From the IMG/VR virus record IMGVR_UViG_3300028840_006257, positions 124,001-188,000 of that record: a stretch of 64,000 nucleotides of DNA. The stretch is one strand, 5' to 3'. Below the pieces are notes generated by a model. That model was not told where the DNA came from. It saw only the letters and a program-made list of their open reading frames with translations, and did not search any database. Positions within the stretch are counted from its first letter, which is position 1. Every line of letters begins with the position of its first letter. The position numbers and the translations under genes are program-made. Shown here piece by piece: positions 3,501-64,000 of the stretch.

Positions 3501-6116
3501 CTGCTGTACCCTACCGGGAACGAGGGCGAGGTCTTCTGGGGTTCGCTCGACCGCAGGGCGAGCAACCTGAGCAGCTGGTCCTTCGTCAGGTACGCGCTGG
3601 ATCCCGGCGCCACGACCCTGAACTTCCGGCAGATCGTCGTCGCGGCCGAGATGAACGACCTGCCCGAGGACGATCCGAACAATATCTGGTTCCTGACGCA
3701 GGAGTTCGGGTCGCGGATCATCGACTTCACGGGCGACCAACTGCTCCTCAAGGCCACCTCAGCCAACAACCAGGCGGGCGTCGAGGACCAGGACCTGACG
3801 ATAGGCTACGCGAGGGTAGAGCCGTTCCTGACGCGGCGTCTCGCCATCGACATGGATAGCACGTTCCAGGTGGACAGCGGCGTCCTCGGAGCGGGGGACC
3901 TCCTCTACGTGGTGCAGGACGGCCTGAGGGAGGTGCGCCTCGCGACCCTGCTCTACGAGGAGACCGGGACGGAACGCCAGCTCCTCGACCTGCCGAACCT
4001 CTCGCTCTCCGGGCTCCTCCTCCCGGACGAGCAGGGATGGTCGAGGGGCGGCGAGCTCACGACGGAGCGCGTTCAGGGTCAGAGGCTCCAGTTCGTCCAG
4101 GCGACGGGCGAGACGCTCGTGTACGCGCTCGTGCTCGTCGAGACGGGAGGAGATCCTCCGCCCGGCGACGGGCGCGTCATCGAGTCGAGGATCCGCGTCG
4201 CCAGCGTGACCACGACGGACCCGGCCGGAGACACCGGGATCTTCTTCGGCTCCGACGTGGGGCCCATCGGGTCTGCTAGGGGCGTCGGCCTCCAGCTCCG
4301 CGCGGCGACGGGCGGCGTCGCGGACCAGGTGTTCCTGTTCTCTCTCGAGACGGGACTCGAGGTCGCGGCGTTCGACGTGGGCTGGAACGACGGAGAACTT
4401 CACACCTATCGAGTCATCGCGGACGCGGACGTCTCCACCGTGTCCGTGGTGGTGGACGACGTGGTGCTGGGCACGGCCGACCTGACGCTGTTCGCCTCCT
4501 CGTCCACGGACACCGAGGCGACGCTCGGCTTCGCGAACACGCTCACGGCCTGCTTCGTCGAGGTCGAGGACTACTCGGTCGTGGTGCTGCCGCCGAGCAC
4601 GGCGGGACGCACGCTAGGCGTCTACGTCCGGGGGGACTCCGACGACATCGACAGCTGGAGGATTCCGCGGACGGACTTGCTCGACGTGCCGAACTCCGAC
4701 CTCTCCGCCGTGGTCGAGCAGATGGACTGGCGGCAGCGGGTCCGCGTCCGTATCCACCGAGACCCGGGCTGGGGCGTGACGATCCTGCGACCGGACCTCC
4801 CGCCGCCGCCCTACTTCACGGGAGACTTCGCGACGCAGTTCACGGAGCCGAGCGCGGGCTGGATCAACGTCGAGTACCGCGAGCTGCCGCGCGCGCCCTC
4901 CAACGCCGCCCTCGGCCAGGTCTCCTTCGGTGCCCTCGATCCGCGGTCGATCACTCAGCTCCGCATCGACGAGGTCCGGTACCGGATCTACAGGTACGCC
5001 ACCGAGGACATCATCATGCCCCCGCACATGGTGCTGAACCAGCAGAACGTCGTCTCGAGCGGGGAGTTTCACGAAGACATCACGGTCGAGCACATCACCG
5101 TTACCTCGACCGACGCGAGGACGGTCGACCTCAAGGGGGGCAACGTCACGGCCGACCGGGTCTTCCAGCTCGTCTCGCTGAACGAGGACGGTACCACGAC
5201 GACCTACCTGCCGGGGTCCTTCGAGTTCGACCGTGACGCCCAGGTCGTTACCATCACGTCCACGCAGTTCCTGGGTTCGGCCTTCGCCGCCGACGACCAG
5301 CTCGACGAGGACCCGGACGTGGTCGACGACGGCTTCCCGCACGAGGACCTGGTCGCGCCCGCGTCTCCGGTCGACGGCATCTCGGACCCGGATCGACGCG
5401 TCGACGCGCTCAACCCGATCAAGATCCCGGTGACGGTCTCGTTCGCTCCGGGGAGGCCCATCACGAAGACCTACGTGTGCTCGCAGCCACTCCTCGACGG
5501 GACGACCCTGCTCAACCAGGACACCCCGCCGTTCGAGACCTCTCAGGTCGGGACCGACGTGCGGTTCCTGGCCTGGGGTTCGCGGATCAACGACCCGAAC
5601 GACGTGCTCAACACCGACCCCGACTTCATCCTGAACGACCCGTTCCGGTTCATCGACTTCAGCAGCGACCCGAAGATCCAGTACGAGCAGATCGATTTCT
5701 GCGAGGTCTCGGAGGGCGAGGAGAACCGTCTGTCCCCGTTCTGCGACGGCGGCTATCCGGGGGCGGCGGACGCGGGCCATCCGGGCAACGATCCGGGCGA
5801 CATCGGCAACGGACCTGTCGAGATCGGCCTCGAGGGTATCGCCTTCACGGAGACCGAACCCATCAGTTTCAATGACGGTCCGTCGGACGGCTTCGGGGGT
5901 TTCACGAGCACCACCTTCCTCAAGGCCAGCGGGGGCGACGCCCCGCCCGGGGGCAACCTCGGAGAGGCCATCCTCTTCACGCCCCTGGGGCCCGAGACGG
6001 TCACTCCGGAGAGCCTCGACGGTAGCGTGGGTTGGAGCGTGATGGGGCAGCTCTACGACACGACCACGAACACCCTCACCCTCCTGTTTTTCGGCACTGA
6101 GTCGCTTGGTCCTTAG
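600..6116 (+). CDS. Giant (1838 aa) putative virion tail/baseplate protein with Ig-like and lectin-like beta modules
   Basis: Long ORF with GC3-rich codons. N-terminal G[YF]GxxxYG repeats, an Ig-like stretch (IIEVFFSNEM...DPASYTL) and a LamG-like strand (LHTYRVIAD...VSVVVDD). Function inferred from size and context. Confidence 0.55.
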   Translation: MSVLGYGLEPFGMGPYGGLGGVMLPAMVPPLGGYGGYAYGTSSYGSLGSFGSPAIGTTSGFGGCGYGINSYGCIGMLTMPPMVISAVSITGFIIEVFFSNEMSPDADLFDPASYTLTDLAGAAPATVLSVQSGVPGVWGPTSVLLHHTGTTLGGLYRVTVVGPRDVSGVEIAAYAPLNEADCLCKGEPPPFTITPTSGTDLLYEFEQDMLPESGFTPGILQTDAYDYETDYPQNLIPVAVDHPFGGNPKHVEVEVVGMTAAEYLGIVSSATAIDYDGTYLPDDPQADFTGQQVGTGTTTQGTDEVLLSSAVGFSYGWRFLDTSGRVLPNSSYRVDVTFDASAAVLLDPAPGVDPVVLVLINDGAVQVELSFKRVVGVDTLEVASGAFVASSSIGWTAQETTVSLARNQKADTYTVVVNGEPIVAGPTASFTAPPGFPAGVQFMVDPNGTYEVVDLPLKALLFTATQTVFSAAWNFLHNQQAPFVGSGALTRDSLLTRKGPLVKGWGDATPATKQDVVVYVNGTPVEVDSVNPYYGRIFPTIPIPLTPPGTMEVTVDYIWFPAPVMAMAGLNTPGLVLNKYDCGPITPTGGNSPGVGLPGGGTNGVELSRFPMAVVLGPRAMRQPLLRSPRFVAYQKPYTAALNSPTTLLLNRDPHQVALSSEHRDAEGVVVFYEGTEGPTVADPPWTLVGTEGLDDADIAGPDPVNPSNVDPDSTLDGVFQVYKTVSGPYGEGDVTFYTQEIDTSFPSSIVMVVRFQVLPSETEDGDAIPIPDGVFVGVGFGCHTNNHLYLVGCLRVNDLQHVGMLVDPSFPELLDSWQVAYATDVEVLDATTCQAQSDELPQLVRERLISDDLVRFQIFAGTQTGVYEVVEIVDQTDGTSTITLSPTTPFPADPALYGNRDFTVYFESRWDGDGEPGRPATYRLVVKNDVKLVPDGLAELYLGASFSGRALELAGAPPFAIPPDGVLLYPTGNEGEVFWGSLDRRASNLSSWSFVRYALDPGATTLNFRQIVVAAEMNDLPEDDPNNIWFLTQEFGSRIIDFTGDQLLLKATSANNQAGVEDQDLTIGYARVEPFLTRRLAIDMDSTFQVDSGVLGAGDLLYVVQDGLREVRLATLLYEETGTERQLLDLPNLSLSGLLLPDEQGWSRGGELTTERVQGQRLQFVQATGETLVYALVLVETGGDPPPGDGRVIESRIRVASVTTTDPAGDTGIFFGSDVGPIGSARGVGLQLRAATGGVADQVFLFSLETGLEVAAFDVGWNDGELHTYRVIADADVSTVSVVVDDVVLGTADLTLFASSSTDTEATLGFANTLTACFVEVEDYSVVVLPPSTAGRTLGVYVRGDSDDIDSWRIPRTDLLDVPNSDLSAVVEQMDWRQRVRVRIHRDPGWGVTILRPDLPPPPYFTGDFATQFTEPSAGWINVEYRELPRAPSNAALGQVSFGALDPRSITQLRIDEVRYRIYRYATEDIIMPPHMVLNQQNVVSSGEFHEDITVEHITVTSTDARTVDLKGGNVTADRVFQLVSLNEDGTTTTYLPGSFEFDRDAQVVTITSTQFLGSAFAADDQLDEDPDVVDDGFPHEDLVAPASPVDGISDPDRRVDALNPIKIPVTVSFAPGRPITKTYVCSQPLLDGTTLLNQDTPPFETSQVGTDVRFLAWGSRINDPNDVLNTDPDFILNDPFRFIDFSSDPKIQYEQIDFCEVSEGEENRLSPFCDGGYPGAADAGHPGNDPGDIGNGPVEIGLEGIAFTETEPISFNDGPSDGFGGFTSTTFLKASGGDAPPGGNLGEAILFTPLGPETVTPESLDGSVGWSVMGQLYDTTTNTLTLLFFGTESLGP

Positions 6117-6349: not shown

Positions 6350-7460
6350 AGTCTCGCAAGCGGAGCTGAGGCGTCGCCAAAAAATCTCAGACGCCTTGAA
6401 GGGACGCAAGAAGGGACCGCGCAAGCGCGTTTCCGAGGAGGCTAGGAAGGCCCATTCCGAAATGATGAAGGTTCGATGGGCCGACATGTCCGACGAAAAA
6501 CGAGCCTGCATTGGACAACGGATCTCGGAATCCCTGAGCGGTAAAAAGCATACCGTGGAGCATCGAAAGGCAAATGCCGAGAGTCGGCGAGGCAAACCCC
6601 TCTCTCAAGAACAACGGAAGAAGATCTCACGGTCTCTCTGTGAAGCCTACGAGGAAGGACGACGCTCCTCGTGGAACACTGGAATGCGTGTGGGGTCTTG
6701 TTCTGAGGAGACCAAGAAAAAGATCTCTGATTCCCTTCGACGGGCGAGTCAGGAAGGACGTCTGACCCGCTGTCCTTGGAATCAAGGAAAACGGACGGGC
6801 CCGCGTCCGAAAGAGGTTCGTCGGAAGATCTCCGAAAGTTTGCGTGGGAGATCTCATTCGGTCTCACCTGAAAAGCGCGAGGCTTGGCGTCAGAAGATTT
6901 CCACAACTAAGCGAGGGGCGCGTCGTTCCGCGGAAGCCTGTCAAAAAACCTCCGAGTCTTTGCGGCGGGCATACGCGGAGGGTCGTCGCGGGATTTCCGT
7001 GAAGTCGGGCTATGGAAAGGGGAGTTACTACGATACGCCGTTCCAAGGCAAGAAATGGTTGCGATCTACTTCTGAAGTTCAGCGCGCACGCGAGTTGGAC
7101 CAGGCCGGCATCATCTGGTTCTACGAGTTACGCAAGTTCGTCGTGGAACTGAAGGGTCACAACTCCACGTACACTCCGGATTTCTGGATTGTCGAAGACC
7201 TCAAAAGAGAGGCCGTATCCTCAGCACCGTCCCTGGAGGACTTCATCAACGAGATGGAGACCTCGGGGCGTTTTCGGATCGAGGATGTGAAAGGCTGGTG
7301 GGGGCCCACACATAAAACCTTCAAGAAGATCAGCGCGTTTCAGGAGCAGTATCCGAGAGTGCCTTTCCGTATCGTGGTCCGAGAAGGTCTGTTCAGAGAG
7401 AGGGCAACACCCGGCATGCGCTGGAAAGAAGAGGAGCAACATGCAGGACAGAGCGTCTGA
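6342..7460 (+). mobile_element. Free-standing homing endonuclease: NUMOD3-type repeats plus C-terminal PD-(D/E)XK nuclease domain
   Basis: Start refined to ATG 6342 (AAGGAG at 6332-6337). Repeated K(K/R)IS(E/D)SL(K/R)G and PWNxG motifs; C-terminal RSTSE...IWFYE...YTPDF...EDVKG. Visibly lower GC than the flanks. Confidence 0.8.
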
Positions 7461-8047: not shown

Positions 8048-8830
8048 ATGAAGTCCTGTCCGGCATGTGGTGAGAAGGACGTTCTGAAGTTCGGCAAGAA
8101 CAAGCGCCGAAAAGACGGCCTTGCGTGCTACTGCCGTGCGTGTTCGCGTCGGAAGGCTAGAGAATACGCTCGTACCCCGGCACAGCAGAAGAAACGGAGG
8201 GTTTACTACGAAGAGAATCGCGAAAAGCTCCTGGGACAGGCGCACGAGCGTTGGCGTGTCAGCAAACATCGCTACGAAGCAGCACGACAGAAATGGGCGG
8301 CCGACAACAGAGAGAGGATGCTCGGTTACTATGCCGCGAAAGCGCACGCCCACCAAGAGTTCGTGGATGCAATCAAAGACGGAAAAGCCTGTTTTGATTG
8401 TCACCGGATGTTCGCGCCCTACGTCATGGAATTCGACCATGTCCGTGGCACGAAACGCTGGGCCATAGGCAAGATGGCGAATCATCGGCGAGAACGTGTC
8501 CTTGAGGAGATCGAGAAGTGCGACCTCGTCTGTTGCGTCTGTCATCGCATCCGCAGTCACGCACGCCGGACACCCTCTAAGAGCCCCCGGCTACAAGCGT
8601 TTCATGAGTGGCTAGCCCCCCTGAAGGCGGGCCCGTGTCATGACTGCGGGCGACGGTTCCCACCTCCAGCCATGGACTTCGACCATGTTTCAGGCATAAA
8701 GGTTGCTGGCATTGCGCAAATGGCTTTCTGGGGTCGTGAGAAAACGTTAGCGGAGATCGCGAAATGCGAGCTTGTCTGCGCCAACTGTCACCGCGAACGG
8801 ACGGTATTCCGTCTTTGGAGGGCAGCCTAG
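8048..8830 (+). mobile_element. Free-standing HNH endonuclease with two tandem HNH domains
   Basis: N-terminal CxxC...CxCxxC finger, then two copies of CxDC...(E/D)FDHV...KC(D/E)LVCxxCHRxR. Low GC. Confidence 0.8.
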
Positions 8831-8831
8831 A

Positions 8832-11800
8832 ATGCCGACCCGGCCCAAATTCTTCCCGTCCTCCGTCAGCCGGTACCTCGACCCGAAGGAGCGTGCCTGG
8901 GACACCGTCATCGCGCTCAAGGGGAAGCTCGTCCTCGACTCCGAGAAGATCCTCCAGCAGGACGTGCGCGAGCTCGACCGGATGCGCCAGCTCGCGCGGA
9001 CGGTCCCGTCGGGTTGGATTCGAGGGCAGTCGCGCGGTGACTCCTACGACGACTTCAGCTACGACGCACCGTGGCTCCCCGGGCCGGTCCTCAACCCCGA
9101 CTGGACGGCCAACGCCTTCCACATGCGGAAGGTCCAGGCGCTCGTCGGGGGCCTGCTCGTGGACGTAGAGTATACGAACACGGACACGCCGGGAGACAAC
9201 CTGATCGTCCTGGACTCGCCGACGGTCTTCGATGGCACGCCGCCGTCGGTCAAGCGCACGGACTTCGTGTTCCTCGAGGTCTGGCTCGCGCTCGTCAGCG
9301 AGAGTCCCAACGCGAAGGGGTCCCTGACCGTCAGCGATCCCGTTGCCTCCGCGCCGGGTGACACGGTGCTGGTCGACGGAGTGACCCTCACGGGCGTGCT
9401 GGTCGTCCCCGCACCGAACCAGTTTAGGATCTTTCCCGGCAGTCCGACCAACACCGCGGCGAGCATCGCGACGCAGCTCAACGCGGCGGTCGCCTCGGTC
9501 AACTGCGTGGCGGACGCTAACATCGTGAGGATCACGGCGGCGCAGGCCGGAGCGGCGGGCAACGCCATCACGCTGAACAGCAGCAACCCGGTCGCGATCC
9601 TGGCATCTGGCGGCTTCCTCACGGGAGGCGCGGACACGCCGAACAAACCGACCCAGGACCTGATCTACCGACACGGCAACGTCCTCTCCTCCGCCGCCGT
9701 CGCGCTCCCCGACGACATCGAGGATCCCATCGTGGGGGCGGAGACCACCAGCAGGGTCCAGGTGCAGTACCGCATCCGCCACACCGGCGCGGCCGAGGGC
9801 GTGGACTTCAAGCTCGAGTGCGACGGCTTCTCTAACCCGGCGGTCCTCGGGCAGGGAACTCAGTCGGCCCCGGTGACCGACTACCCCTTCGTTCCCGCCG
9901 ACCTCAAGACCGTCCTGCTGAACTCGGACGCCCGTGACGGGGTGGCCGGTCCCGAGATCGGCTACGGCATCCTGGACAACGGGCTCTGGATCGCGGGCGA
10001 CGGGACGCAGGCGAGCGCCACCGCGCTGGGAACCGTCGACGGATTCTCGTACGCCGTCCCGATCGGCTTCGTGTTCCGGCGCAACGACGCCACGCCCGGG
10101 ATCGGGTTCGACCCGCGCACGAACTCGAACGGCGGACTCCTGGCCAACCATGCCGCCCACGCGAACGTCAACCTGTTCGCCAGCGTTCCGGTCGGCGAGT
10201 CCGACCGCCCCGACGGTCTCTTCGCGGACGCCATCGCGGACACGGACGTGATGGACCTGCGCAGGCACGTGAAGTTGACGGGCCAGGATCTCGGTGCCGA
10301 ACTCCAGTTCCAGATGCAGGCGCTCCAGGACGGGGACTACCGGACGTGGGCGATCGACACGGCCTCGAAGCAGATGCTCGGCAACGGCTCGGGCGACGTG
10401 TCCACGCGGAACCTGGTCGCGAACGAGGTCGGACGCACGCTAGCGAAGGGCGGCACCGCGCCCCTCTCCGGGGACACGACCAGGGGCGAGACGATCCGCA
10501 ACTTCGACCACTTCGCCCGACGTTTCGGCGATCAACCCGTCGTGGAGCGCGTCGTGCTGGAGCTCTACGCGACGGACGACCAGGTCGGGCCTCCCGCACA
10601 TCCTGGAAAGTACGTCGTGCGTCCGGGCTACGCGGTCGCCTTCAGCGGGTGGGCCGAGGGGGACGAGATCAACATCGACCTTCTGGAACTCAACGCCACC
10701 ACGCTGGGCGACTTCGACCCCAACAACGTCGTTTCCGTACCGGGGCCACCCCCGACGGGAACGGTGCTCGACTACGCTCCTCCGGGAACGACGATCACCG
10801 ACGTCCTCTCCCTCTACCACGACGACGGCAATTTCAACGTCGCGGTGGACCAGACGGCGAAGCCGACGACGATCATCGGGCTCGGGACCTCGCACGTCCA
10901 GATTACCCTCGACCAGAACCCGACGCAGGTAAACGGCGGACTCCCGGTGGCCGACCACGACATGGTCGGCACGAGCGGCACGGGTGACGTGGGTTCGCAG
11001 CGCAGGATCTTCGTCGAGCTCGAGGTGACCTACCCCATCGGCGTCGGGACCACGGACACGCCCGACCTCGAGCTCTTCCCCGACACCACGGGCTGGCCCT
11101 ACCGGGCGATGATCGAGAACTGGCTCCCGACGGGCCCCGACCAGCGGCCGCTGGACATGGAGGACCGACGCGCCCCCGAGTTCCGACAGGGATTCCGCGA
11201 GGTGGGGATCGAGTACGTGGCGAACGATCCGACGGGGGGCGGAGGCCATGCCGGCGTTCCCATCGGGACGCTCACGCCCGAGACGGTCGTCAGCCGCGAT
11301 CCTCTGAGCTTCGTGCTCGGGCGGCGTTTCTGGGGCGACTCCGTCACGTCCGTCCTCGTCACGGACGCGAACGACACGAACCCCCGCGACGTGGACGATC
11401 CCAACACCCACTACGGCGCCTCCTCCAGGCTCGTGGTGCTCAACAACACCGGCATTCCCCCGGCCGTCCCGCTCTCCGGAGCGGGCCAGACCCTCTGCGA
11501 GGTGAGGTTCTTCGCGCAGGACGCCATCCCGAACTTCGGCCCCCCGGGTGGCGGCTACCAGCAGGCGATTTACTTCCGCACGAACGCCCCGCAGACGGCG
11601 GGCGTCAAGGAGGGAACGATCAGCACGGTCGTCACGGATTTCCCGTACTCGGGCTCCCTCGGGCCGATGCCCGCGACGCTGGAGGTCGAGCCGCTGTACC
11701 TCTCGGGCAACGTCTGGACCGGCCAGGTCGGCATGGGAAGCGTCGAGCTTCCCTTCCCCTACTACGCCCCGCTCGATCAGCTTCCCGTCAACGACGGCCA

Positions 11801-58007: not shown

Positions 58008-58197
58008 GCGTCTGCGCTGGCACAGACAGGCGACCGGGATGACCGGCGCCGAGGTCGCTGCGGCGCTCAAGGTCTCGCCCGCCACGCTGTCTCGTTGGGA
58101 GAACGATCTGTTGTCACCCCCCGTGGTTCAGCTCCGACTCTTGGCGCGCGTGCTGGTCATTCCCGACTACTGGAACCTGCTGAGGGGCCCGGACTGA
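57982..58197 (+). CDS. XRE-family helix-turn-helix transcriptional regulator
   Basis: LGERLRWHRQATGMTGAEVAAALKVSPATLSRWEND. Confidence 0.85.
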   Translation: MDRVGSLGERLRWHRQATGMTGAEVAAALKVSPATLSRWENDLLSPPVVQLRLLARVLVIPDYWNLLRGPD

Positions 58198-59015
58198 TGC
58201 CACACGAAATGAGATTGAAAGATGCTTTGACGGGCCTCCGCGAGATGGGCGACGGGTCTGCCAATCTTATCGTAACCGATCCTCCGTATGAGTCCTTGGA
58301 ACGCTGGCGTGACATGGGGACGACCACGAGGCTCAAAAAGTCCAAGATGTCGAACAACCCGTGGTTCCCGACGGTCCCCAACGACTATTTCGTGCCGTTC
58401 TTCGTGGAGTGCTACAGGGTTCTGGCGAGCAACACGCACATGTACGTGATGTGCGACGAGGAGACATCCGAGGCGCTCAGGCCGATGATCCGCGCCGCCG
58501 GGTTCAGCCTCCGCAAGTCGCTCATCTGGCACAAGGTCGGGAAGCTGGAGAAGGTTTCGTGCCCGAGGTGCGGGACGCACGTCTGTGACCGTCGCGCTCC
58601 GGGGACGCCCGGCATGGGCTATCCGTACCGCTCGGCCTACGAGATGATCCTGCTCGCCGAGAAGGGCAAGAGGAAGCCTCCGGAGGACAGGTCGGTCCGC
58701 AACGTGCTCGAGGAGGGCTGGATCGACGAGGCGTGGATCAAGAGCCAGGACGCGTACCCGACGGAGAAGCCGGTCGCGCTCTGCCTGCCTCTGATAAGGA
58801 TCTCCTCCGAGAAGGGCGACCTCGTGCTCGATCCCTTCGCGGGCAGCGGCTCCGCGGGCGAGGCGGCGTTCGAGCTCGGGCGCGACTTCCTGGGTTTCGA
58901 CGTGCAGCAGGAGGCCCTCGACAGGTTCGAGGAGCGGCGGCAGCACTGGACCTACGAGAACCCGGAGGAGGCCCCGAAGGTCACGGGGGGCATCCTCGAT
59001 TTCCTGTCACACTAG
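58197..59015 (+). CDS. Beta-class amino DNA methyltransferase (272 aa)
   Basis: Start refined to ATG 58197 (TGATG overlap with the XRE gene). IVTDPPY, ECYRVL, YPTEKP, LDPFAGSGS. Confidence 0.9.
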   Translation: MPHEMRLKDALTGLREMGDGSANLIVTDPPYESLERWRDMGTTTRLKKSKMSNNPWFPTVPNDYFVPFFVECYRVLASNTHMYVMCDEETSEALRPMIRAAGFSLRKSLIWHKVGKLEKVSCPRCGTHVCDRRAPGTPGMGYPYRSAYEMILLAEKGKRKPPEDRSVRNVLEEGWIDEAWIKSQDAYPTEKPVALCLPLIRISSEKGDLVLDPFAGSGSAGEAAFELGRDFLGFDVQQEALDRFEERRQHWTYENPEEAPKVTGGILDFLSH

Positions 59016-59020
59016 GAACG

Positions 59021-59702
59021 TCACCACAGGCGCCGGAGATCTCCCTTCTGGTATGCCTCCCAAGTGGTGCGTTTTCGGGTGCGATGGTCCACGACCTGGT
59101 TGCGTTGGACGGCGATCGTCCGTCGTTTGTCCCCACGCGCTCCACGACCCACCTGGGCCTTCCTGTCGGCGTTCCGCCCCCGCGTCTCCCTAGCGTCGAT
59201 CTTGGCCTTGAGACGCGCCCTCAGGACGGCCAGGGCCGTTTGACGGTTGACGTGCTGGCTGCGACCGCCGTCGATCCTCACGGTGATGTCCGAGGGGCGG
59301 TGCGACAAGACCACGCAGCTGTCGGTCTTGTTCCGATGCTGGCCTCCCTTTCCGCTCCCGCGCGTGAACGACTCCTCGAGGTCGCGAGGGTCGATGTGGA
59401 GCTCGTGCTCCTCAGGCTCAGGAAGGACGGCGATCGTCACCGTCGACGTGTGGACGCGTCCGCGCTTCTCGGTCGGAGGGACCCGTTGGAATCTGTGACC
59501 CCCGGCCTCATGGCGGAACGCCGCCACGGCCCCACGTCCTGCGACGCGCATCAGGAGGAAGCCGGGTCTCGCCTCGAGGATCTCGTGGTCAAAGACCCTC
59601 CTGGGCCATGAACTTCTCGTACACCCGGTACTGGACGCGCACGAGGTCCTTGGAGTCGTCGCCGCCCTCGGCAGCCCTGATTTCCACGATCACTCGTTCC
59701 AT
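59021..59702 (-). CDS. RF1-type peptide chain release factor lacking domain 1, expressed via +1 programmed frameshift (~226 aa)
   Basis: Frame 0 (ATG 59702): MERVIVEIRAAEGGDDSKDLVRVQYRVYEKFMAQEGL-TGA. The +1 frame continues DHEILEARPGFLLMRVAG...EAGGHRFQRVPPTEKRGRVHTST...GSGKGGQHRNKTDS. Both parts align with RF1 domains 2-4. Confidence 0.88.
59588..59602 (-). promoter_or_regulatory. prfB-like +1 frameshift cassette AGGAGG-GT-CTT-TGA-C
   Basis: Internal SD at 59602-59597, CTT at 59594-59592, TGA at 59591-59589, C at 59588; the +1 frame joins the downstream RF ORF exactly. Confidence 0.88.
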
Positions 59703-59782
59703 TTCGATTTGTCTACTTCCTCTCGCGCTCGGGCGCAAGATGCCGTTGATGTTCGTGCTCGTGTGGACGTGCGCGAACCTGG

Positions 59783-60203
59783 CTAGAGGAATCCTGGAAA
59801 CGAACCCTGAAACTCGTAGTCCGATGCAAGCCTGATTCGCTTAGCCTGTTTGTTGCGGGAGGGTGCGACACGCAGAGAAGCTTTCCTTGTTCCAACATGT
59901 TCGACCGGTACTAAGTACACGGCATCCAACTCTGGTGAGTACACGGCAAAAAACTCGATTTCTTCTCGGTAGGCTCTCGTCTCGCCCGTGTTCCAGTTGT
60001 TGGAACATGTCGAAAAATTGAGGGCTCCTTTGAAGACCTTGCCGGTCTTGCACTGAATACGAACGAAACGACCATCCTGATCCACGACCAAATCGTACCT
60101 CTGTGAGTCTCCGAAGGGAGTCAGAACAACCAACCCTGCCCGCAAAAAATCTAGCAATCATTTGCGCTTCAGACCGTTCTCCGATCTCCTTTGGGGTTGC
60201 CAT
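59783..60203 (-). pseudogene. I-Ssp6803I-like (group I intron-type) PD-(D/E)XK endonuclease broken by one extra T in a T6 run
   Basis: Frame A gives MATPKEIGERSEAQMIARF and frame B gives FLRAGLVVLTPFGDSQRYDLVVD...RIQCKT. Removing one T at 60144-60149 joins them. Low GC. Confidence 0.8.
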
Positions 60204-60238
60204 AGAGCTAAGATATCACAACCCCCATCTCTTGTAAC

Positions 60239-60331
60239 TGGCGAGCGAGGAGGGATTTGAACCCCCGATGGGACTTGCGTCCTCTGGATTAAAAGTCCAG
60301 TGCGTTCGGCCAGGCTACGCGTAACTCGCCC
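60239..60331 (-). tRNA. tRNA-Lys(UUU), atypical: long variable arm, 4-nt acceptor-D linker, G73, encoded CCA
   Basis: GGGCGAG/CTCGCTC acceptor; GCGT/ACGC D stem; CTGGA-CTTTTAA-TCCAG anticodon arm; GGAC-GCAA-GTCC variable arm; GGGGG-TTCAAAT-CCCTC T arm. Confidence 0.88.
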
Positions 60332-60396
60332 ACAACTGATGGAGCAGGGCGCCGCGCGTTTGAGTCTGTGGTGTGTAACCGACATCGTCTTCTCGG

Positions 60397-60469
60397 TGAG
60401 CCGGGTGGGTCACGATCCCACGGCCTGCGGGTTAAGAGTCCGCCGCTCTGCCTACTGAGCTACCGGCCC
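60397..60469 (-). tRNA. tRNA-Lys(CUU), CCA not encoded, atypical T loop
   Basis: GGGCCGG/CCGGCTC acceptor, A73 then CCG; GCTC/GAGC D stem; GCGGA-CTCTTAA-CCCGC; GTGGG-ATCGTGA-CCCAC. Confidence 0.88.
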
Positions 60470-60514
60470 TGGAGACGCACTCCAGCGATGCCCGAGGGCA
60501 CGCGAGGCGTCCCC
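60470..60514 (-). ncRNA. Candidate tRNA-Ala/tmRNA-like acceptor minihelix
   Basis: GGGGACGC...GCGTCTCC-A hairpin with G3:U70 and A73 equivalents; 3' end abuts G1 of tRNA-Lys(CUU). Confidence 0.35.
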
Positions 60515-60557
60515 CCAGGCTAGGTCTTGCGTTTCAGTCGGACAGTCACGGGAATCC

Positions 60558-60586
60558 GTTGTACGCGACGAGGGGCGCCCTGTCAA
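60558..60586 (-). promoter_or_regulatory. Sigma70-like promoter for the tRNA/RF operon
   Basis: TTGACA (60586-60581), 17-bp spacer, TACAAC (60563-60558). Confidence 0.7.
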
Positions 60587-60595
60587 GCCTCGGGC

Positions 60596-61477
60596 TCAGA
60601 CGATGCACTCGCACGGCCGGTTCTCGTTCTCCTCCTCCTGCTCCTGGAGGACCGGGGAGAAGTAGTCGAAGATCGTAGGGCGCCCGTGCCACTCGAGGGC
60701 CTCTCGAGCGTGGGCCCAGAAGAGGGACGCCTCCGTGTTCTCGGTCGCCTCCACCTTCGCCTCCCTCATGATCGCGAAGTCGGCCTCGAGCTCCTCTAGC
60801 CGGACGTTCCGCAGGATGGTGTGGCCGATGTGGGCCTCGGCCTTCTTGGCCTTCTCCCAGAGGTCGGGTCGGGTGCAGTAGACGATGTACCAGTGGCGCC
60901 TGCCGGCCCTGAGGCACGCCGTGCAGTTCGCGTGCTTGAAGACCCCGTAGGTAAGCGGCGGCTCTATCCCGATCTCCCTGGTGGACTCGATGGTGCGGCC
61001 GGTCCAGCGAGCGAGTGGGTAGTCGGTCTGGTATCCCATGTCCCCCAGGACGGCCGTGCGCCTCTCGATCCTGTGATCCTCGTACGCGTCGAACCCGTAG
61101 TAGACGACGCAGTTCTTCTCCGGTTCCATGTTCGCCGCGAGCCACTTGTGGAAGGGCTCCGTCTTGAACCTGTGCGTGCAGAGCACGGACGTGGCGCCGA
61201 CCTTGAAGCCCGTGTGCTTGATGCAAACGTCGAACTGGTCCATCGTGTCCCAGCTCGGATAGTTCGCGTACGTGATCTCGACTCCGAGGTAGCCGGCGAC
61301 CTCGCGCTTGAAGCGCTTGATGTCCGGGTCCTCGACCGACGGGTTGATGTCGTGGTTGAGGAGGATCAGATTCTCGGTCCCGTGGCGACGCGCGACCTCG
61401 ACGGCCACGAGCGCCGAGCTGTGGCCCCCGCTGAAGCACACGACGTGCTTCGTGGTCTCGTCGATCCTCGGCATCAT
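60596..61477 (-). CDS. PAPS-reductase-family / PP-loop protein with Cys clusters
   Basis: VVCFSGGHSSA (PP-loop), CTHRFK, YYGFDAYE..R, HANCTACLRAG, C-terminal CEC. Start refined to 61477 (SD AGGAG). Confidence 0.75.
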   Translation of the reverse strand: MMPRIDETTKHVVCFSGGHSSALVAVEVARRHGTENLILLNHDINPSVEDPDIKRFKREVAGYLGVEITYANYPSWDTMDQFDVCIKHTGFKVGATSVLCTHRFKTEPFHKWLAANMEPEKNCVVYYGFDAYEDHRIERRTAVLGDMGYQTDYPLARWTGRTIESTREIGIEPPLTYGVFKHANCTACLRAGRRHWYIVYCTRPDLWEKAKKAEAHIGHTILRNVRLEELEADFAIMREAKVEATENTEASLFWAHAREALEWHGRPTIFDYFSPVLQEQEEENENRPCECIV

Positions 61478-61544
61478 CTGGGGGTCTCCTAGAGGACGAC
61501 CAGCGAGGTCGCTCATTCTACGCCCCGACGGACCTCGGTCCTTT

Positions 61545-61832
61545 TCACGAAAGGTCGAGTTCCCGCAGCTGCTCGTGAAAATCCAGCAGATGCCGCCGTT
61601 CCTGGCGCGTGAGTGCCTCGAAGCTGCGGCCGAAGACCGTGAAGCCGAAGTGGCGACGCGGATTCCCGCACGAGTAACACGAGCACCAGGCCAGGTTGTC
61701 GGCTAGGCGCAGGGCCGCCTGATGGAGCTCCTCCTCGGTGAAGCGGGCGCCGCTCCACCAGCGCCTCTGGATCCTCTTGACGTGGGCGATCATCCTCGCC
61801 CGGTGATGGCGACGCAGGGCTCTCTTGGACAT
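61545..61832 (-). CDS. Small basic phage protein with CSCxxCGNPR motif
   Basis: SD GAGGAGG; RALRRHH...CSCYSCGNPRRH. Confidence 0.6.
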   Translation of the reverse strand: MSKRALRRHHRARMIAHVKRIQRRWWSGARFTEEELHQAALRLADNLAWCSCYSCGNPRRHFGFTVFGRSFEALTRQERRHLLDFHEQLRELDLS

Positions 61833-61956
61833 GACGGCCTCCTCGGCCCGCCCGGTCCCGAGAGCCTCCTGCTCCGGGCCGGGCTAGGTCGTGATCGGAC
61901 CGCCGCGTGCCTTGTCGCGCATCACGCCCCCTCTATACATCAACTCGAGGCCCGTG

Positions 61957-62589
61957 TCACCGTTTGAAGGGTCGTTCGACCTCGGAGAGAAAGCGGTATC
62001 CGAGAGAGTCGATCTCCTCTCCGAAGCGACGCCGGACGATGGCCCTGGTCTCGTCGTCGTAGTAGGACGGCCACGGCATCTTCTCGGTCGTGACGTTCGT
62101 CCAGGAGAGGCGGACGGGCTCGATTCCGAACCTGTCGAGGAACATGTCGAGGTCGTCCTGGAGGCGCTCGTAGCGGAGGGCGTAGTCCGCGTCCTGCCAG
62201 AAGATCTTGCCGGTCCTGAGGTACGGACCTCCGGGCATTCCCTCGTCGTAGACCTCGACGAAGTGACGGAAGGTGACCTCTCGGTCCAGGTGCTTTTCGA
62301 GGACTTTCCTCTGTCGCAGCCACCAGGTCACGAGCAGGTCGTACGGGTTCCTGATCGTCGTGACGGCCAGCTCGACGCCCACGAAGGAGTCGGGTTGGCG
62401 CTTCCTCAGCTCGGCGCGCGTCGCGTGGTGGGTCGCCCTGGGAAACCAGTGCTCGATCTCGAGGTCGCGGACCTCGTTGATGTCGCTGACTACGGCCCCC
62501 TCTAGCGTCGCGAGGGCTCGCGTGGTGGCGATGGAGGCCGTGTGCGGGGTCGCCAGGTAGATGAACCTTCCGGGAAGTAGGACCGCCAT
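61957..62589 (-). CDS. Sulfotransferase-family protein
   Basis: FIYLATPHTASIAT (5'-PSB-like loop, His in place of the usual Lys), TTIRNPYDLLVTW (3'-PB), LRYERLQDD. Start refined to 62589. Confidence 0.7.
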   Translation of the reverse strand: MAVLLPGRFIYLATPHTASIATTRALATLEGAVVSDINEVRDLEIEHWFPRATHHATRAELRKRQPDSFVGVELAVTTIRNPYDLLVTWWLRQRKVLEKHLDREVTFRHFVEVYDEGMPGGPYLRTGKIFWQDADYALRYERLQDDLDMFLDRFGIEPVRLSWTNVTTEKMPWPSYYDDETRAIVRRRFGEEIDSLGYRFLSEVERPFKR

Positions 62590-62675
62590 CGTGCGTCCTC
62601 GTGGGCGCGTGCGGCCCACGTCTAGGGGCCGTCAAAAGGGCGGTTATCGTCCCCCGAAGATCGGCGCGTGACCGC

Positions 62676-63368
62676 TCAGGCCCTGCGCCTCTCGTCGAGG
62701 ATGGCTTGGATGGCCCGGAAGCGACGGTTGCTCTCCTCGGCGAGCTCGTCGAGGCTCATGGGGACGATCTCGCGCTCGAGCCACGCCCCCAGGCTCTGCG
62801 GGGCCTCGGCCGGAGGGACGCCGAGGTGCAGATAGTGAGGTTTCACGGAGAGGAGCTGCCGCACCATCGGTCGGCTGTGGGTCGTGACGAACACGCCCCT
62901 CGTCTGCTCGGGAAGATCGGCCACGAACTCGGCCACGACCGTTCCAGCTCCGGCCGCGGCCGCCTCCCCCATGCCGATGTCGGGCTCGTCCCAGTAGAGG
63001 AGGTGCGAGTGCGTCCGAGCTCGGCACGTGCTGATGGCCGTCCTCACCGTCATTCCCGAGTTCTCTCCGGTGGAGCGGAAGCCCTCGTCTCCGTAGACGA
63101 AGCCCTTCATCGCCCCCATCATGTTCATGCCGGCGCGGGCCTCCATGCTGAGGTGGATGACCTCCTTGATGGAGGTGTGGCTCTTGGCCGACGCCTGAAC
63201 GCAGCGTCGGAAGAAGCTCTTCCCGCTCGCGTTCTCTCCGAGCACGAGGAAGAGGGGCGACGACCCCTTCACCCAGAGGGCCGGGATGGCGGGTTCGTCG
63301 CCGACGAAGTATCGCCAGCTACCGAGGATGTTTCCGACGATCCAGAGGCCGGTGCTCGGCTTGCTCAT
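62676..63368 (-). CDS. ABC-type (single-domain) ATPase
   Basis: Start refined to ATG 63368. GENASGKS, STGE signature, LLYWDEPDIGM, VTTHS. Confidence 0.8.
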   Translation of the reverse strand: MSKPSTGLWIVGNILGSWRYFVGDEPAIPALWVKGSSPLFLVLGENASGKSFFRRCVQASAKSHTSIKEVIHLSMEARAGMNMMGAMKGFVYGDEGFRSTGENSGMTVRTAISTCRARTHSHLLYWDEPDIGMGEAAAAGAGTVVAEFVADLPEQTRGVFVTTHSRPMVRQLLSVKPHYLHLGVPPAEAPQSLGAWLEREIVPMSLDELAEESNRRFRAIQAILDERRRA

Positions 63369-64000
63369 CGGTCTCCTCCGTCGAACAGGAGGATCCGGTC
63401 GAGCATGGCCGCCGGGAACCTGCGTCGCAGGATCTCCTCGGCCTCCTCGCGCGAGTGCTTCATGGACCTGTGCGTGAGCACGAGATAGTCGCCCTCGAAT
63501 TTCTCGCAGTGCTCGGCCATCTCGGCCACGTGCGTGTGGCCGTAGCGCCGCGCGCCCTCGACGTTCGCGTCGTCCATCTCCCAGGTCGTGACCTCGTGGA
63601 CGAGCACCTTGGCCCTCCGAGCCCTCTCGTGCTCCAGCAGGAAGTCGATCCGGGTGTCGCCCGAGACCACCAGGAGGGTGCTCACCACGTCGTCCGTGAC
63701 CTGCACGCCCTCCCGACGGAGGCGCCCTATCTCGGAGCCCTCCATGCCGACGAACTCGGTCTTGAGCTTGCTCGTGGTGCGGTCGACGCCCCACCCGAGC
63801 GACGCCCCCCGGTGCCAGCTCCGCATCGCGTGTACGACCGCGCCGCGTCCGAGCTCGAAGAAGTAGCCGGGCCTCGCGGGGTAGAGGCGAACCTTCGCCT
63901 CGTGCTCGCTGTCCCGCTGCACGTCGCGCATCGCCTCGAGGAGCCTCTCCATCGGCTCGCCGAGCTCGTCCGGTAGGTAGACGCTCAGCGTCGCCTTGTT
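63365..64000 (-). CDS. rnz: TM-type tRNase Z (metallo-beta-lactamase fold), 5'-truncated by the window end
   Basis: Frame open to base 64000. KLKTEFVGMEGSEIGRLRREGVQVT exosite-like segment, VSGDT, VLVHEVT, YGHTH, LTHRSMKH. Confidence 0.8.
   Translation of the reverse strand, partial: NKATLSVYLPDELGEPMERLLEAMRDVQRDSEHEAKVRLYPARPGYFFELGRGAVVHAMRSWHRGASLGWGVDRTTSKLKTEFVGMEGSEIGRLRREGVQVTDDVVSTLLVVSGDTRIDFLLEHERARRAKVLVHEVTTWEMDDANVEGARRYGHTHVAEMAEHCEKFEGDYLVLTHRSMKHSREEAEEILRRRFPAAMLDRILLFDGGDR

Follow-up and report, generated by a model that had tools for sequence, protein, structure and literature searches.

A release-factor gene encoding a shortened RF1-type translation termination factor, which can be made in full only if the ribosome slips by +1 at an internal stop codon, was identified beside unusual tRNA-Lys genes in a fragment of a very large phage. 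The record (IMGVR_UViG_3300028840_006257) is a 213-kb fragment, estimated to be 40% complete; the window analyzed here is a 64,000-nucleotide stretch of it. This type of gate is known from bacterial RF2 but seems undescribed for RF1-type factors, and the same gated gene is also present in the chromosomes of the Nannocystaceae, the likely host group. We consider a programmed +1 frameshift in a loosely assembled translation region the best explanation of this locus (probability of approximately 0.6).

Gene content of the minus-strand module

A sequence-only reading had described nine elements in this region, from RNase Z to the release factor, as one module for tRNA supply and translation termination. 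This gene list is essentially correct; all nine are present on the minus strand at the place indicated, and they converge on a plus-strand DNA methylase. The features, by window position, are as follows.

63365-64000 (minus), TM-type RNase Z (tRNA 3' endonuclease); the full 280-aa ORF (63365-64207) runs 207 nt past the window end
62676-63368 (minus), stand-alone ABC/SMC/OLD-class P-loop ATPase (230 aa)
61957-62589 (minus), sulfotransferase (Sulfotransfer_2 family)
61545-61832 (minus), small conserved phage protein (95 aa, phrog_4499) of unknown function
60596-61516 (minus), PP-loop ATP pyrophosphatase of the PAPS-reductase/SspD/DndC kind (306 aa, motif SGGHSS)
60558-60586 (minus), weak promoter-like site, TTGACA-17-TACAAC, upstream of the tRNAs
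60469-60485 (minus), 6-bp leader hairpin abutting the 5' end of tRNA-Lys(CUU)
60395-60469 (minus), tRNA-Lys(CUU), 75 nt
60239-60331 (minus), tRNA-Lys(UUU), 93 nt, with a long variable arm
59783-60157 (minus), PD-(D/E)XK (PDDEXK_5) homing-type endonuclease
59589-59702 (minus), release-factor ORF1, 37 codons encoding the start of domain 2 and ending in TGA (59591-59589)
59588-59601 (minus), predicted programmed +1 frameshift cassette: GGAG (59601-59598), GGT spacer, CTT (59594-59592), TGA (59591-59589), C (59588)
59021-59590 (minus), release-factor ORF2 in the +1 frame, encoding the rest of domain 2 (PPT motif), domain 3 (GGQ), and domain 4
58095-59015 (plus), convergent N6/N4 DNA methyltransferase (2.6e-31)

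The RNase Z matched Lactamase_B_2 (2.4e-12), and its best solved relatives are rice RNase ZS1 (7xgt, 6.5e-43) and T. maritima tRNase Z (1ww1, 1.6e-15), so it is TM-type; like the T. maritima and plant short enzymes, it has a metallo-beta-lactamase fold, although it falls below every NCBIfam RNase Z cut-off (68 against 293 bits) and its activity and cleavage site are inferred from sequence alone. The ATG of the ATPase gene overlaps the RNase Z stop codon (ATGA), and an Atlas search placed the ATPase with phage clusters annotated AAA_23, AAA_21, and ABC_tran (TM 0.76). The sulfotransferase was supported by a weak match to phrog_3347 and by an Atlas search (0.97; 87 of 100 hits Sulfotransfer_2; TM 0.77). 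The small protein matched phrog_4499 (1.7e-9) but had no informative relatives; it contains one CxCxxC cluster, and its earlier designation as a zinc protein is putative. The PP-loop enzyme matched phrog_424 PAPS reductase (1.1e-31), SspD (9.8e-15), and PDB entry 21fy 'PptA' (2.5e-8); it thus looks like the DNA-phosphorothioation enzymes SspD/DndC and not like a tRNA enzyme. The promoter-like site did not pass a consensus scan, and the fold of the region containing the leader hairpin (the 'minihelix' of the sequence-only reading) was not significant (z = -1.6). The endonuclease was supported by matches to PDDEXK_5 (7e-33) and HEase (2.6e-7).

The tRNA-Lys(CUU) (57.4 bits) has a G2.U71 pair and, as had been noted, no complete CCA, its 3' end being ACC followed by G. 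The tRNA-Lys(UUU) was found by Rfam at 38.9 bits and as a cloverleaf by ARAGORN only at a relaxed threshold; it has a GGAC-GCAA-GTCC hairpin in the variable arm, a G2.U71 pair, discriminator G, and an encoded CCA. The stretch is the first part of a tRNA region that continues beyond the window with 14 more tRNAs.

Conservation of the module in related phages

The interpretation of these elements as one coordinated counter-defence kit, against hosts that attack tRNA-Lys or termination, was only partly supported. A translation theme is real for four elements (RNase Z, the two tRNA-Lys genes, and the release factor), but scattering of the genes in relatives, named beforehand as evidence against the kit, was observed for half of the list. 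In a 92%-complete relative of 618 kb, the PP-loop and ATPase genes have no homolog, sulfotransferase paralogs lie at 177, 214, and 562 kb, and RNase Z lies 22 kb from the release-factor locus on the other strand. The endonuclease is absent between the tRNA and the release factor in the four closest phage-type loci examined (L002, L003, L004, and L110, the last of which is filed in a MAG); it is a lineage-specific insertion, present at this place in this phage only. Only the order small protein, tRNA-Lys array, gated release factor, and convergent methylase is conserved; homologs of the small protein are located just upstream of the tRNA-Lys arrays in L002, L003, and L004, and methylase homologs (58-69% identical) are located downstream of the release factor in the same three loci.

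We therefore regard the stretch as the proximal end of the tRNA/translation region of a huge phage and as a loose assembly of genes rather than one co-evolved kit. In this view, the small protein, the tRNA-Lys array, and the short release factor form the conserved core, RNase Z probably trims the phage pre-tRNAs (most of which lack an encoded CCA), and the ATPase, sulfotransferase, SspD-like PP-loop enzyme, and homing endonuclease are variable cargo. A counter-defence role for the tRNA-Lys genes is plausible by analogy only: tRNA-Lys is a proven target of PARIS (AriB), and a phage tRNA-Lys rescues T5 (PMC11464382). Related phages carry two to four tRNA-Lys genes for both anticodons, including CUU, which a GC-rich host should already have in plenty. 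While the present phage, like T5, carries tRNA-Lys genes with a body that differs from the host type, T5 tRNA-Lys differs by substitutions in the anticodon stem, whereas here one isoacceptor carries an extra GNRA-capped variable-arm hairpin. Nothing links the release factor to defence, no defence system targeting release factors was identified here, and the same gated gene is a resident chromosomal gene of Nannocystis with no tRNA nearby, so it did not evolve as part of a phage kit; a nine-part kit is thus unlikely.

A simpler alternative is that the tRNA-Lys genes compensate for codon usage and that the release factor merely adds termination capacity late in infection, the frameshift being an inherited feature of a captured host gene with no phage-specific meaning. 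AAA makes up 13% of the Lys codons of the phage, against 1 of 53 in four N. punicea genes, and huge phages commonly carry tRNAs, RF1/RF2, and other translation factors (PMC7162821); the phage release factor also nests within host-lineage copies that already have the gate. However, codon compensation does not explain the tRNA-Lys(CUU) copies or the long variable arm. Moreover, the gate is kept intact in all five related phage-type contigs examined (the window, L002-L004, and L110) at 68-72% protein identity, with synonymous change around it, which argues for continued selection in the phage. This alternative remains possible but tentative.

A putatively frameshift-gated RF1-type release factor

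The product joined by a +1 shift is 226 aa long and aligns without a break to RF1 positions 105-318; Leu37, at the shift, falls on a conserved Trp of RF1. It has PCRF and RF-1 domains, a PPT tripeptide, and GGQ, and presented its best profile match to the RF1 equivalog (206 bits, against a cut-off of 400), with lower scores for prfB (141 bits) and prfH (66 bits, against a cut-off of 167); the best PDB match was T. maritima RF1 (1e-44). It differs from canonical RF1 (prfA) in lacking domain 1 and the C-terminal helix and in its signature (GKGGQHRNK instead of GAGGQxVN), and it is only 40% identical to the RF1 of the likely host lineage; no programmed frameshift is known in prfA (PMC12421855).

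A total of 41 distinct loci were fetched by pattern from viral and genome collections, and all were examined. Of these, 24 need a +1 shift at CTT-T-stop (18 TGA and 6 TAG), 12 have an in-frame TGA at the ancestral Trp codon (11 followed by A), and five are ungated; 21 of the 24 frameshift sites have GGAG or GGGG exactly 3 nt upstream of CTT. The ORF1 peptide is 51-59% identical in relatives. Three whole phage records with the in-frame TGA use the standard code, as open-frame coverage is high and TGA ends 12 of 76 and 13 of 44 long ORFs in the two low-GC records. A wider protein search also found ungated homologs, with 26 of the 120 closest protein clusters being uninterrupted; the gate is thus not obligatory for the family.

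A pseudogene or an assembly error could be suspected, as gene callers split the gene, sources hold only the C-terminal part, and the joined Nannocystis products are not in a collection of 15 billion proteins. This explanation is effectively refuted by conservation: the same cassette is found at the same codon in dozens of independent sequences with both halves conserved, the Shine-Dalgarno-like element is kept at fixed spacing, and contigs from three sequencing runs in three studies match the site with no differences.

Six cultured Nannocystis species carry the gated gene in a conserved chromosomal setting, beside FemAB-like and ClpB genes and in addition to canonical RF1 and RF2, and the phage copies nest inside the Nannocystaceae clade (99/93 support). 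The phage host is therefore probably a member of the Nannocystaceae, although this assignment rests on one gene tree and on MAG binning.

The cassette has the same architecture as the prfB frameshift site, i.e., an internal Shine-Dalgarno-like element 3 nt before CUU, followed by UGA and C, in a class-I release-factor gene and conserved across homologs (PMC3711429; PMC12421855). However, the gene here is RF1-type (PPT, not SPF), the site lies in domain 2 at the position of a conserved Trp rather than at codon ~26 of domain 1, the stop codon is TAG or TAA in some members, which was never seen in 8,164 prfB genes (PMC12421855), and a sister clade replaces the frameshift with an in-frame TGA. In the model that we favor, the ribosome would hold CUU in the P site and UGA in the A site after 37 codons; if termination at UGA is slow, peptidyl-tRNA-Leu would slip onto UUU and translation would continue. 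The resulting factor would have an RF1-type reading head (PPT, plus the Gln and Thr partners) and GGQ without domain 1 and, from published work on truncated RFs, should be independent of RF3. Its output should rise when RF2-dependent termination is limiting, while the product itself should read UAA and UAG and not the UGA that gates it, so that in this phage the loop would be cross-regulatory rather than self-limiting. The anatomy of the gene, the conservation of the gate across the family, the standard genetic code of the phages with an in-frame TGA, and the kinship with the chromosomal Nannocystaceae genes are shown by our analysis; that frameshifting occurs, its efficiency, the codon specificity, and the physiological role are inferred from DNA sequence alone, as all runs holding the sequence are DNA. 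RF1-like specificity is only assumed, because the third residue of the tripeptide is Asn (PPN) in many members, and ORF1 has only a distant Shine-Dalgarno-like sequence before its ATG. Variation of the gate stop codon (TGA, TAG, rarely TAA) also fits an RF2 sensor poorly, and fits a general stop-codon-pause sensor or a factor with broader specificity better.

Such a general pause sensor would be expected if the short factor were a ribosome-rescue factor, analogous to PrfH or ArfB, made only when ribosomes pause at stop codons and releasing peptides from stalled or damaged ribosomes. Like PrfH (RFH), an RtcB-linked accessory paralog with a patchy distribution (PMC1586002, PMC6514570), the factor lacks domain 1, and in Nannocystis it is an extra paralog beside canonical RF1 and RF2. 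However, its RF1 reading head (PPT/PPN with the Gln and Thr partners) is conserved, whereas PrfH has a diverged head, its match to prfH is weak, and no RtcB was found in the phage record or seen beside the Nannocystis gene; this role appears doubtful. A virus-encoded termination factor whose own translation must pass internal stop codons has also been described in Mimivirus/Megavirus (PMC3521657), but that class-I gene is of the eukaryotic/archaeal eRF1 type and needs both a frameshift and a readthrough in one gene, while here the factor is bacterial RF1-type and the two solutions are used by different clades.

Long-arm tRNA-Lys genes

Long-arm tRNA-Lys genes with a GNRA-capped hairpin, supported by stem covariation, recur in 19 viral contigs. 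They share a long variable arm and D-arm features reminiscent of Tyr/Ser/Leu tRNAs with class II tRNAs and allo-tRNAs (PMC5389517), but their anticodon is Lys (UUU or CUU) and their acceptor/T arrangement is mostly a normal 7/5. In several phage arrays, the long-arm gene is the only tRNA-Lys(UUU), which suggests ordinary Lys decoding.

Genomic setting and gene content of the minus-strand block

The IMG/VR record that contains the window (bases 124001–188000) is linear, 213,010 bp long and 65% GC; CheckV estimates it at 40% complete, so it is a fragment of a huge phage. Near-identical DNA was found in sediment and seawater metagenomes from three studies; all sequencing runs that contain the locus are DNA. 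A megablast search of the 5-kb stretch against 50,697 phage records gave no match, and a search in distant mode found only tRNA-sized matches. All tRNAs called by ARAGORN in the record lie on the minus strand at 184–198 kb, and the stretch under study is therefore the first part of a long tRNA region. Every item listed in the sequence-only reading was found to be present. In order from the window end inwards, the minus strand carries the following features:

RNase Z, 63365–64207 (−), a 280-aa metallo-beta-lactamase protein
ATPase (−), a 230-aa ABC/SMC/OLD-class protein whose ATG overlaps the RNase Z stop codon at 63365–63368
Sulfotransferase (−), a Sulfotransfer_2 enzyme
Small protein (−), 95 aa, of phrog_4499, with no known function
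PP-loop enzyme (−), a 306-aa protein of the PAPS-reductase kind that also matches SspD of DNA phosphorothioation
Upstream signals (−), a weak promoter-like TTGACA-17-TACAAC and a 6-bp leader hairpin
tRNA-Lys(CUU), 60395–60469 (−), without a complete CCA
tRNA-Lys(UUU) (−), a 93-nt species with a long variable arm
Endonuclease (−), a PDDEXK_5 homing-type enzyme
Release factor (−), a gene in two frames, with the ATG of ORF1 at 59702

A plus-strand N6/N4 methylase converges on this block. The best solved relatives of the RNase Z are rice RNase ZS1 (7xgt, 6.5e-43) and T. maritima tRNase Z (1ww1, 1.6e-15), and the HxHxDH motif is present as THGHADH, so the protein is of the TM type; however, it scored below the curated NCBIfam cut-offs (68 against 293 bits for RNase_Z, and 48 against 507 bits for RNase_Z_T_toga). 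The RNase Z stop codon and the ATPase start codon overlap as ATGA with GGAGGAG just upstream, suggesting translational coupling of two genes that are not linked in relatives. Pfam and NCBIfam searches returned nothing for the sulfotransferase, the small protein and the PP-loop enzyme, which were resolved only through PHROGs, PADLOC and the Atlas; the name "PptA" of a PDB entry matched by the PP-loop enzyme (21fy) could not be traced in the literature searched. Neither of the upstream signals is statistically notable: a σ70 consensus scan found no promoter, terminator-like sites were no more frequent than in shuffled sequence, and the leader fold is not significant.

The sequence-only reading had further interpreted these elements as one module, a coordinated counter-defence kit against hosts that attack tRNA-Lys or translation termination, and had named scattering of the genes in relatives, together with a lack of rescue, as what would refute it. 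We fetched relatives through the release factor and compared gene content. Three viral contigs (L002, from a 618-kb, 92%-complete record; L003; and L004) and one contig filed in a MAG (L110) share 68–72% release-factor identity with the window. In L002, L003, and L004, the order small protein, tRNA-Lys array, release factor, and (convergent) methylase is kept, while L110 was examined only for its four tRNA-Lys genes upstream of the release factor. RNase Z is located within 3 kb in L003, but 22 kb away on the other strand in the 618-kb record. The PP-loop and ATPase genes have no homolog in any of these records, sulfotransferase paralogs sit at three distant places, and the endonuclease is missing between the tRNA and the release factor in all of them. 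The genes are therefore scattered in relatives for about half of the list. Thus, while the observation itself is confirmed, its interpretation as a nine-part counter-defence kit is not supported; what remains conserved is tRNA-Lys plus the release factor, and even that may reflect common descent of five related phages. The value of the locus lies in a recoding-gated, domain-1-less RF1 paralog shared by huge phages and Nannocystaceae, and in a recurrent long-arm tRNA-Lys design. L110 (contig JBDHAB010000014.1, 72 kb, filed as a Gemmatimonadota MAG) has the closest release factor (72% identity) and the same four-gene tRNA-Lys array, including a long-arm species, and is probably a huge-phage contig binned into a bacterial MAG. 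In addition, contigs of a co-occurring relative in two sequencing runs join the release-factor ORF1 region to the long tRNA-Lys region (59601 to 60286 in window coordinates), skipping 684 nt that include the endonuclease gene; only 28 letters match on one side of this joint, which was therefore not used as evidence, and the release factor of this relative resembles that of L004.

An RF1-type release-factor gene with a prfB-like shift site

ORF1 encodes 37 residues that match the start of RF domain 2 and ends, in the zero frame, at CTT TGA C (59594–59588), preceded by GGAG (59601–59598) and a 3-nt spacer; this is the architecture of the prfB frameshift site (PMC3711429). Skipping one base restores the translation and gives a 226-aa protein with PCRF (1.4e-21) and RF-1 (5.1e-26) domains and a GGQ motif in SGKGGQHRNK. 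This joined product scored 206 bits on the RF1 equivalog model, 141 on prfB and 66 on prfH, and aligned without a gap to RF1 positions 105–318 and to T. maritima RF1 at 1e-44; the Leu at the shift falls on the conserved Trp of RF1. The RF1 reading head is kept, as the sequence HRFQRVPPTEKRGRVHTST aligns to HRVQRVPVTE..GRIHTST of T. maritima RF1, although many relatives have PPN in place of PPT. The protein lacks the N-terminal domain 1 (RF3/stalk-interacting) and the C-terminal helix, and its scores of 206 and 202 bits lie below the RF1 equivalog cut-offs of 400 and 423. It also falls below the prfH equivalog cut-off (65.6 against 166.65 bits), and no RtcB was found in the phage record, which is only 40% complete.

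The gate is not peculiar to this phage. We examined 41 distinct loci from IMG/VR and from GTDB genomes, which fall into three types.

Gate types among the 41 distinct release-factor loci
+1 shift at CTT-T-stop: 24 loci; 18 TGA and 6 TAG; 21 have GGAG or GGGG exactly 3 nt upstream
In-frame TGA at the Trp position: 12 loci; 11 are followed by A
Uninterrupted: 5 loci; all from Actinomycetota

A following A is a leaky context for UGA readthrough by tRNA-Trp. Two members moved the shift site about 20 codons downstream and use TAG. One phage member of the otherwise ungated actinobacterial clade (L021:5848–6501) has the AAGGAGTGTCTTTGAC cassette about 12 codons earlier than usual; this cassette is identical in sequence to that of the unrelated low-GC phages L007 and L011, suggesting independent gain or transfer of the cassette. 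An alternative genetic code (TGA = Trp, code 4) as the reason for the in-frame TGA was tested on three whole phage records (G004, G001, and G002) and rejected, because these records have high open-frame coverage under the standard code, gain little when TGA is read as sense, and use TGA to end long ORFs; their TGA is therefore gene-specific recoding. A protein search widened the picture: of the 120 nearest clusters, 26 are uninterrupted (52–62% identity, with Leu at the gate position), at least 31 show the CTT-T-stop signature in their upstream frame (mostly TGA, some TAG, rarely TAA), and the other 57 were called from a start downstream of the gate. Sources name these proteins "peptide chain release factor 1" and hold only the truncated part, and an exact look-up of the joined Nannocystis products found nothing; gene callers and databases thus systematically truncate these genes. 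Contigs of three runs match the site in the window exactly, and a pseudogene or an assembly error is excluded.

Origin and predicted role of the release factor

Six cultured Nannocystis species carry the gated gene (57–60% identity to the phage protein) in one conserved chromosomal neighbourhood beside FemAB-like and ClpB genes, with no tRNA nearby. In N. pusilla Na p29 (L124), the release-factor gene and the neighbouring FemAB-like and ClpB genes all show single-base gaps relative to five sister species, and the anomalies of this copy were therefore set aside as assembly indels rather than biology. N. punicea also has canonical RF1 and RF2, identified by tblastn, to which the phage protein is only 40% and 34% identical, respectively. 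In a maximum-likelihood tree, the frameshift-type sequences form one clade (99/97), within which the phage copies nest among the Nannocystaceae copies (99/93); the in-frame-TGA sequences form a second clade (100/99) of phages plus Alphaproteobacteria and Hahella, and the ungated actinobacterial ones lie apart. The simplest reading is that the phage lineage captured a resident gene of its host lineage, gate included, and has kept it under selection. These results also give a host lead for a clade of huge sediment phages.

By analogy with prfB, a ribosome with CUU in the P site and UGA in the A site would shift +1 when termination is slow, helped by anti-SD pairing, and output should therefore be inversely tied to RF2 activity. 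The product looks RF1-specific while the gate is UGA, so that, in contrast to the autoregulation of prfB, it would not read its own gating stop codon and the loop in this phage would be cross-regulatory; with TAG gates it would be self-limiting. While the arrangement of the shift site and its conservation across the family are shown by the sequences, the frameshifting itself and the stop-codon specificity are inferred, the latter from sequence only. The mix of stop codons and the frequent PPN variant of the tripeptide leave two other readings open, namely that the gate may be a general sensor of pausing at stop codons or that the factor may have altered specificity. Truncated RFs without domain 1 are reported to remain active but uncoupled from RF3 (Mora et al. 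2003, as cited in PMC6514570).

Programmed frameshifting in release-factor genes is the textbook case of translational autoregulation and has been regarded as specific to RF2. In open-access text, a 2025 survey of more than 12,000 genomes reported no convincing case in prfA and never TAG in the prfB gate (PMC12421855), a reviewer remark says the same for the RF1 family (PMC1586002), and a review of release-factor evolution does not mention phage copies or such a paralog (PMC6514570). The nearest precedent in viruses is the Mimivirus eRF1-type gene, which needs both a frameshift and a readthrough (PMC3521657). The family described here differs from prfB in that an RF1-type factor without domain 1 carries the same cassette at a different place, with TGA, TAG or TAA in the gate, while in a sister clade an in-frame TGA sits exactly where Trp belongs. 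This makes several old questions testable, including why RF2 but not RF1 needs a gate, what a class-I factor does without domain 1 and RF3, and whether stop-codon pausing can act as a general sensor; as cultured Nannocystis strains carry the gene, the biology can be studied without the uncultured phage. A more far-reaching possibility, which the evidence does not rule out but which we consider less likely than not, is that domain-1-less RF1 paralogs shared between Nannocystaceae (and other bacteria) and their huge phages form an undescribed class of back-up or rescue release factor. In this view, synthesis would be switched on by ribosome pausing at an internal stop codon, with one clade using a +1 frameshift and another using UGA readthrough by tRNA-Trp at the ancestral Trp codon. 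This would be the first recoding-gated RF1-type factor, possibly with altered (PPN) or broadened stop-codon specificity, and phages would deploy it, together with structurally disguised tRNA-Lys species, to keep translating when the action of the host or of a defence system compromises termination and tRNA-Lys.

Long-arm tRNA-Lys genes and other RNA genes

Both tRNA-Lys genes of the window form a cloverleaf with a CUU or UUU anticodon in a 7-nt loop; however, the UUU species does not have a class I body (short variable loop), as it carries a 4-bp, GCAA-capped variable arm. Every tRNA-Lys of this phage group (60395–60469 in the window and all tRNA-Lys of L002–L004), whether normal or long-armed, begins GGGC and ends GCTC, giving a conserved G2.U71 wobble pair that E. 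coli tRNA-Lys lacks; the discriminator base varies (A, U, G) among the long-arm species. Each phage has normal 75–77-nt species and 87–93-nt species whose variable region forms a hairpin, and a pattern scan found such long-arm tRNA-Lys genes in 19 viral contigs with 34–68% GC. RNAalifold on a MAFFT alignment of 21 long-arm tRNAs did not recover the variable-arm helix, because the arms are ragged in the alignment, but when each variable region was folded alone, 19 of 21 sequences gave a 3–4-bp stem; there are 13 different stem sequences, and the loop is GNRA in 15 (GAAA in 10, GCAA in 5). The design is thus recurrent and covariation-supported. Directly upstream of the release factor in L003 (5790–5875, plus strand) lies a degenerate copy of the long-arm tRNA-Lys(UUU), which lacks the 5′ half of the T arm and is called by neither ARAGORN nor Rfam.

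In several arrays, the long-arm species is the only tRNA-Lys(UUU), and it probably decodes normally. The phage uses AAA for 13% of Lys codons, as compared to about 2% in four Nannocystis genes; supply is therefore a sufficient reason for the UUU species, but not for the CUU copies or the extra arm. Resistance to a nuclease that targets tRNA-Lys, as shown for T5 and PARIS (PMC11464382), is a reasonable but hypothetical role.

Further RNA genes were noted in other contigs. A low-GC phage (L006) carries 83–85-nt tRNA-Met(CAU) genes with long variable arms (5506–5590 and 6530–6612), one of which has the C1xA72 mismatch typical of initiators, as well as a tmRNA (3130–3498), next to its TAG-gated release factor. 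In the arrays of three contigs with long-arm tRNA-Lys (L149, L151, and L152), ARAGORN also called 76–77-nt tRNA-Leu genes (UAA, CAA) without a long arm, a 94-nt tRNA-Ile(UAU) and, in L151, a tRNA with anticodon UUA (stop); the class I/II body types seem to be shuffled in these phages. Another viral contig, which carries an in-frame-TGA release factor (L013), encodes a full-length bacterial class A RNase P RNA (8614–8980, plus strand; Rfam 167.8 bits) inside a dense tRNA array.
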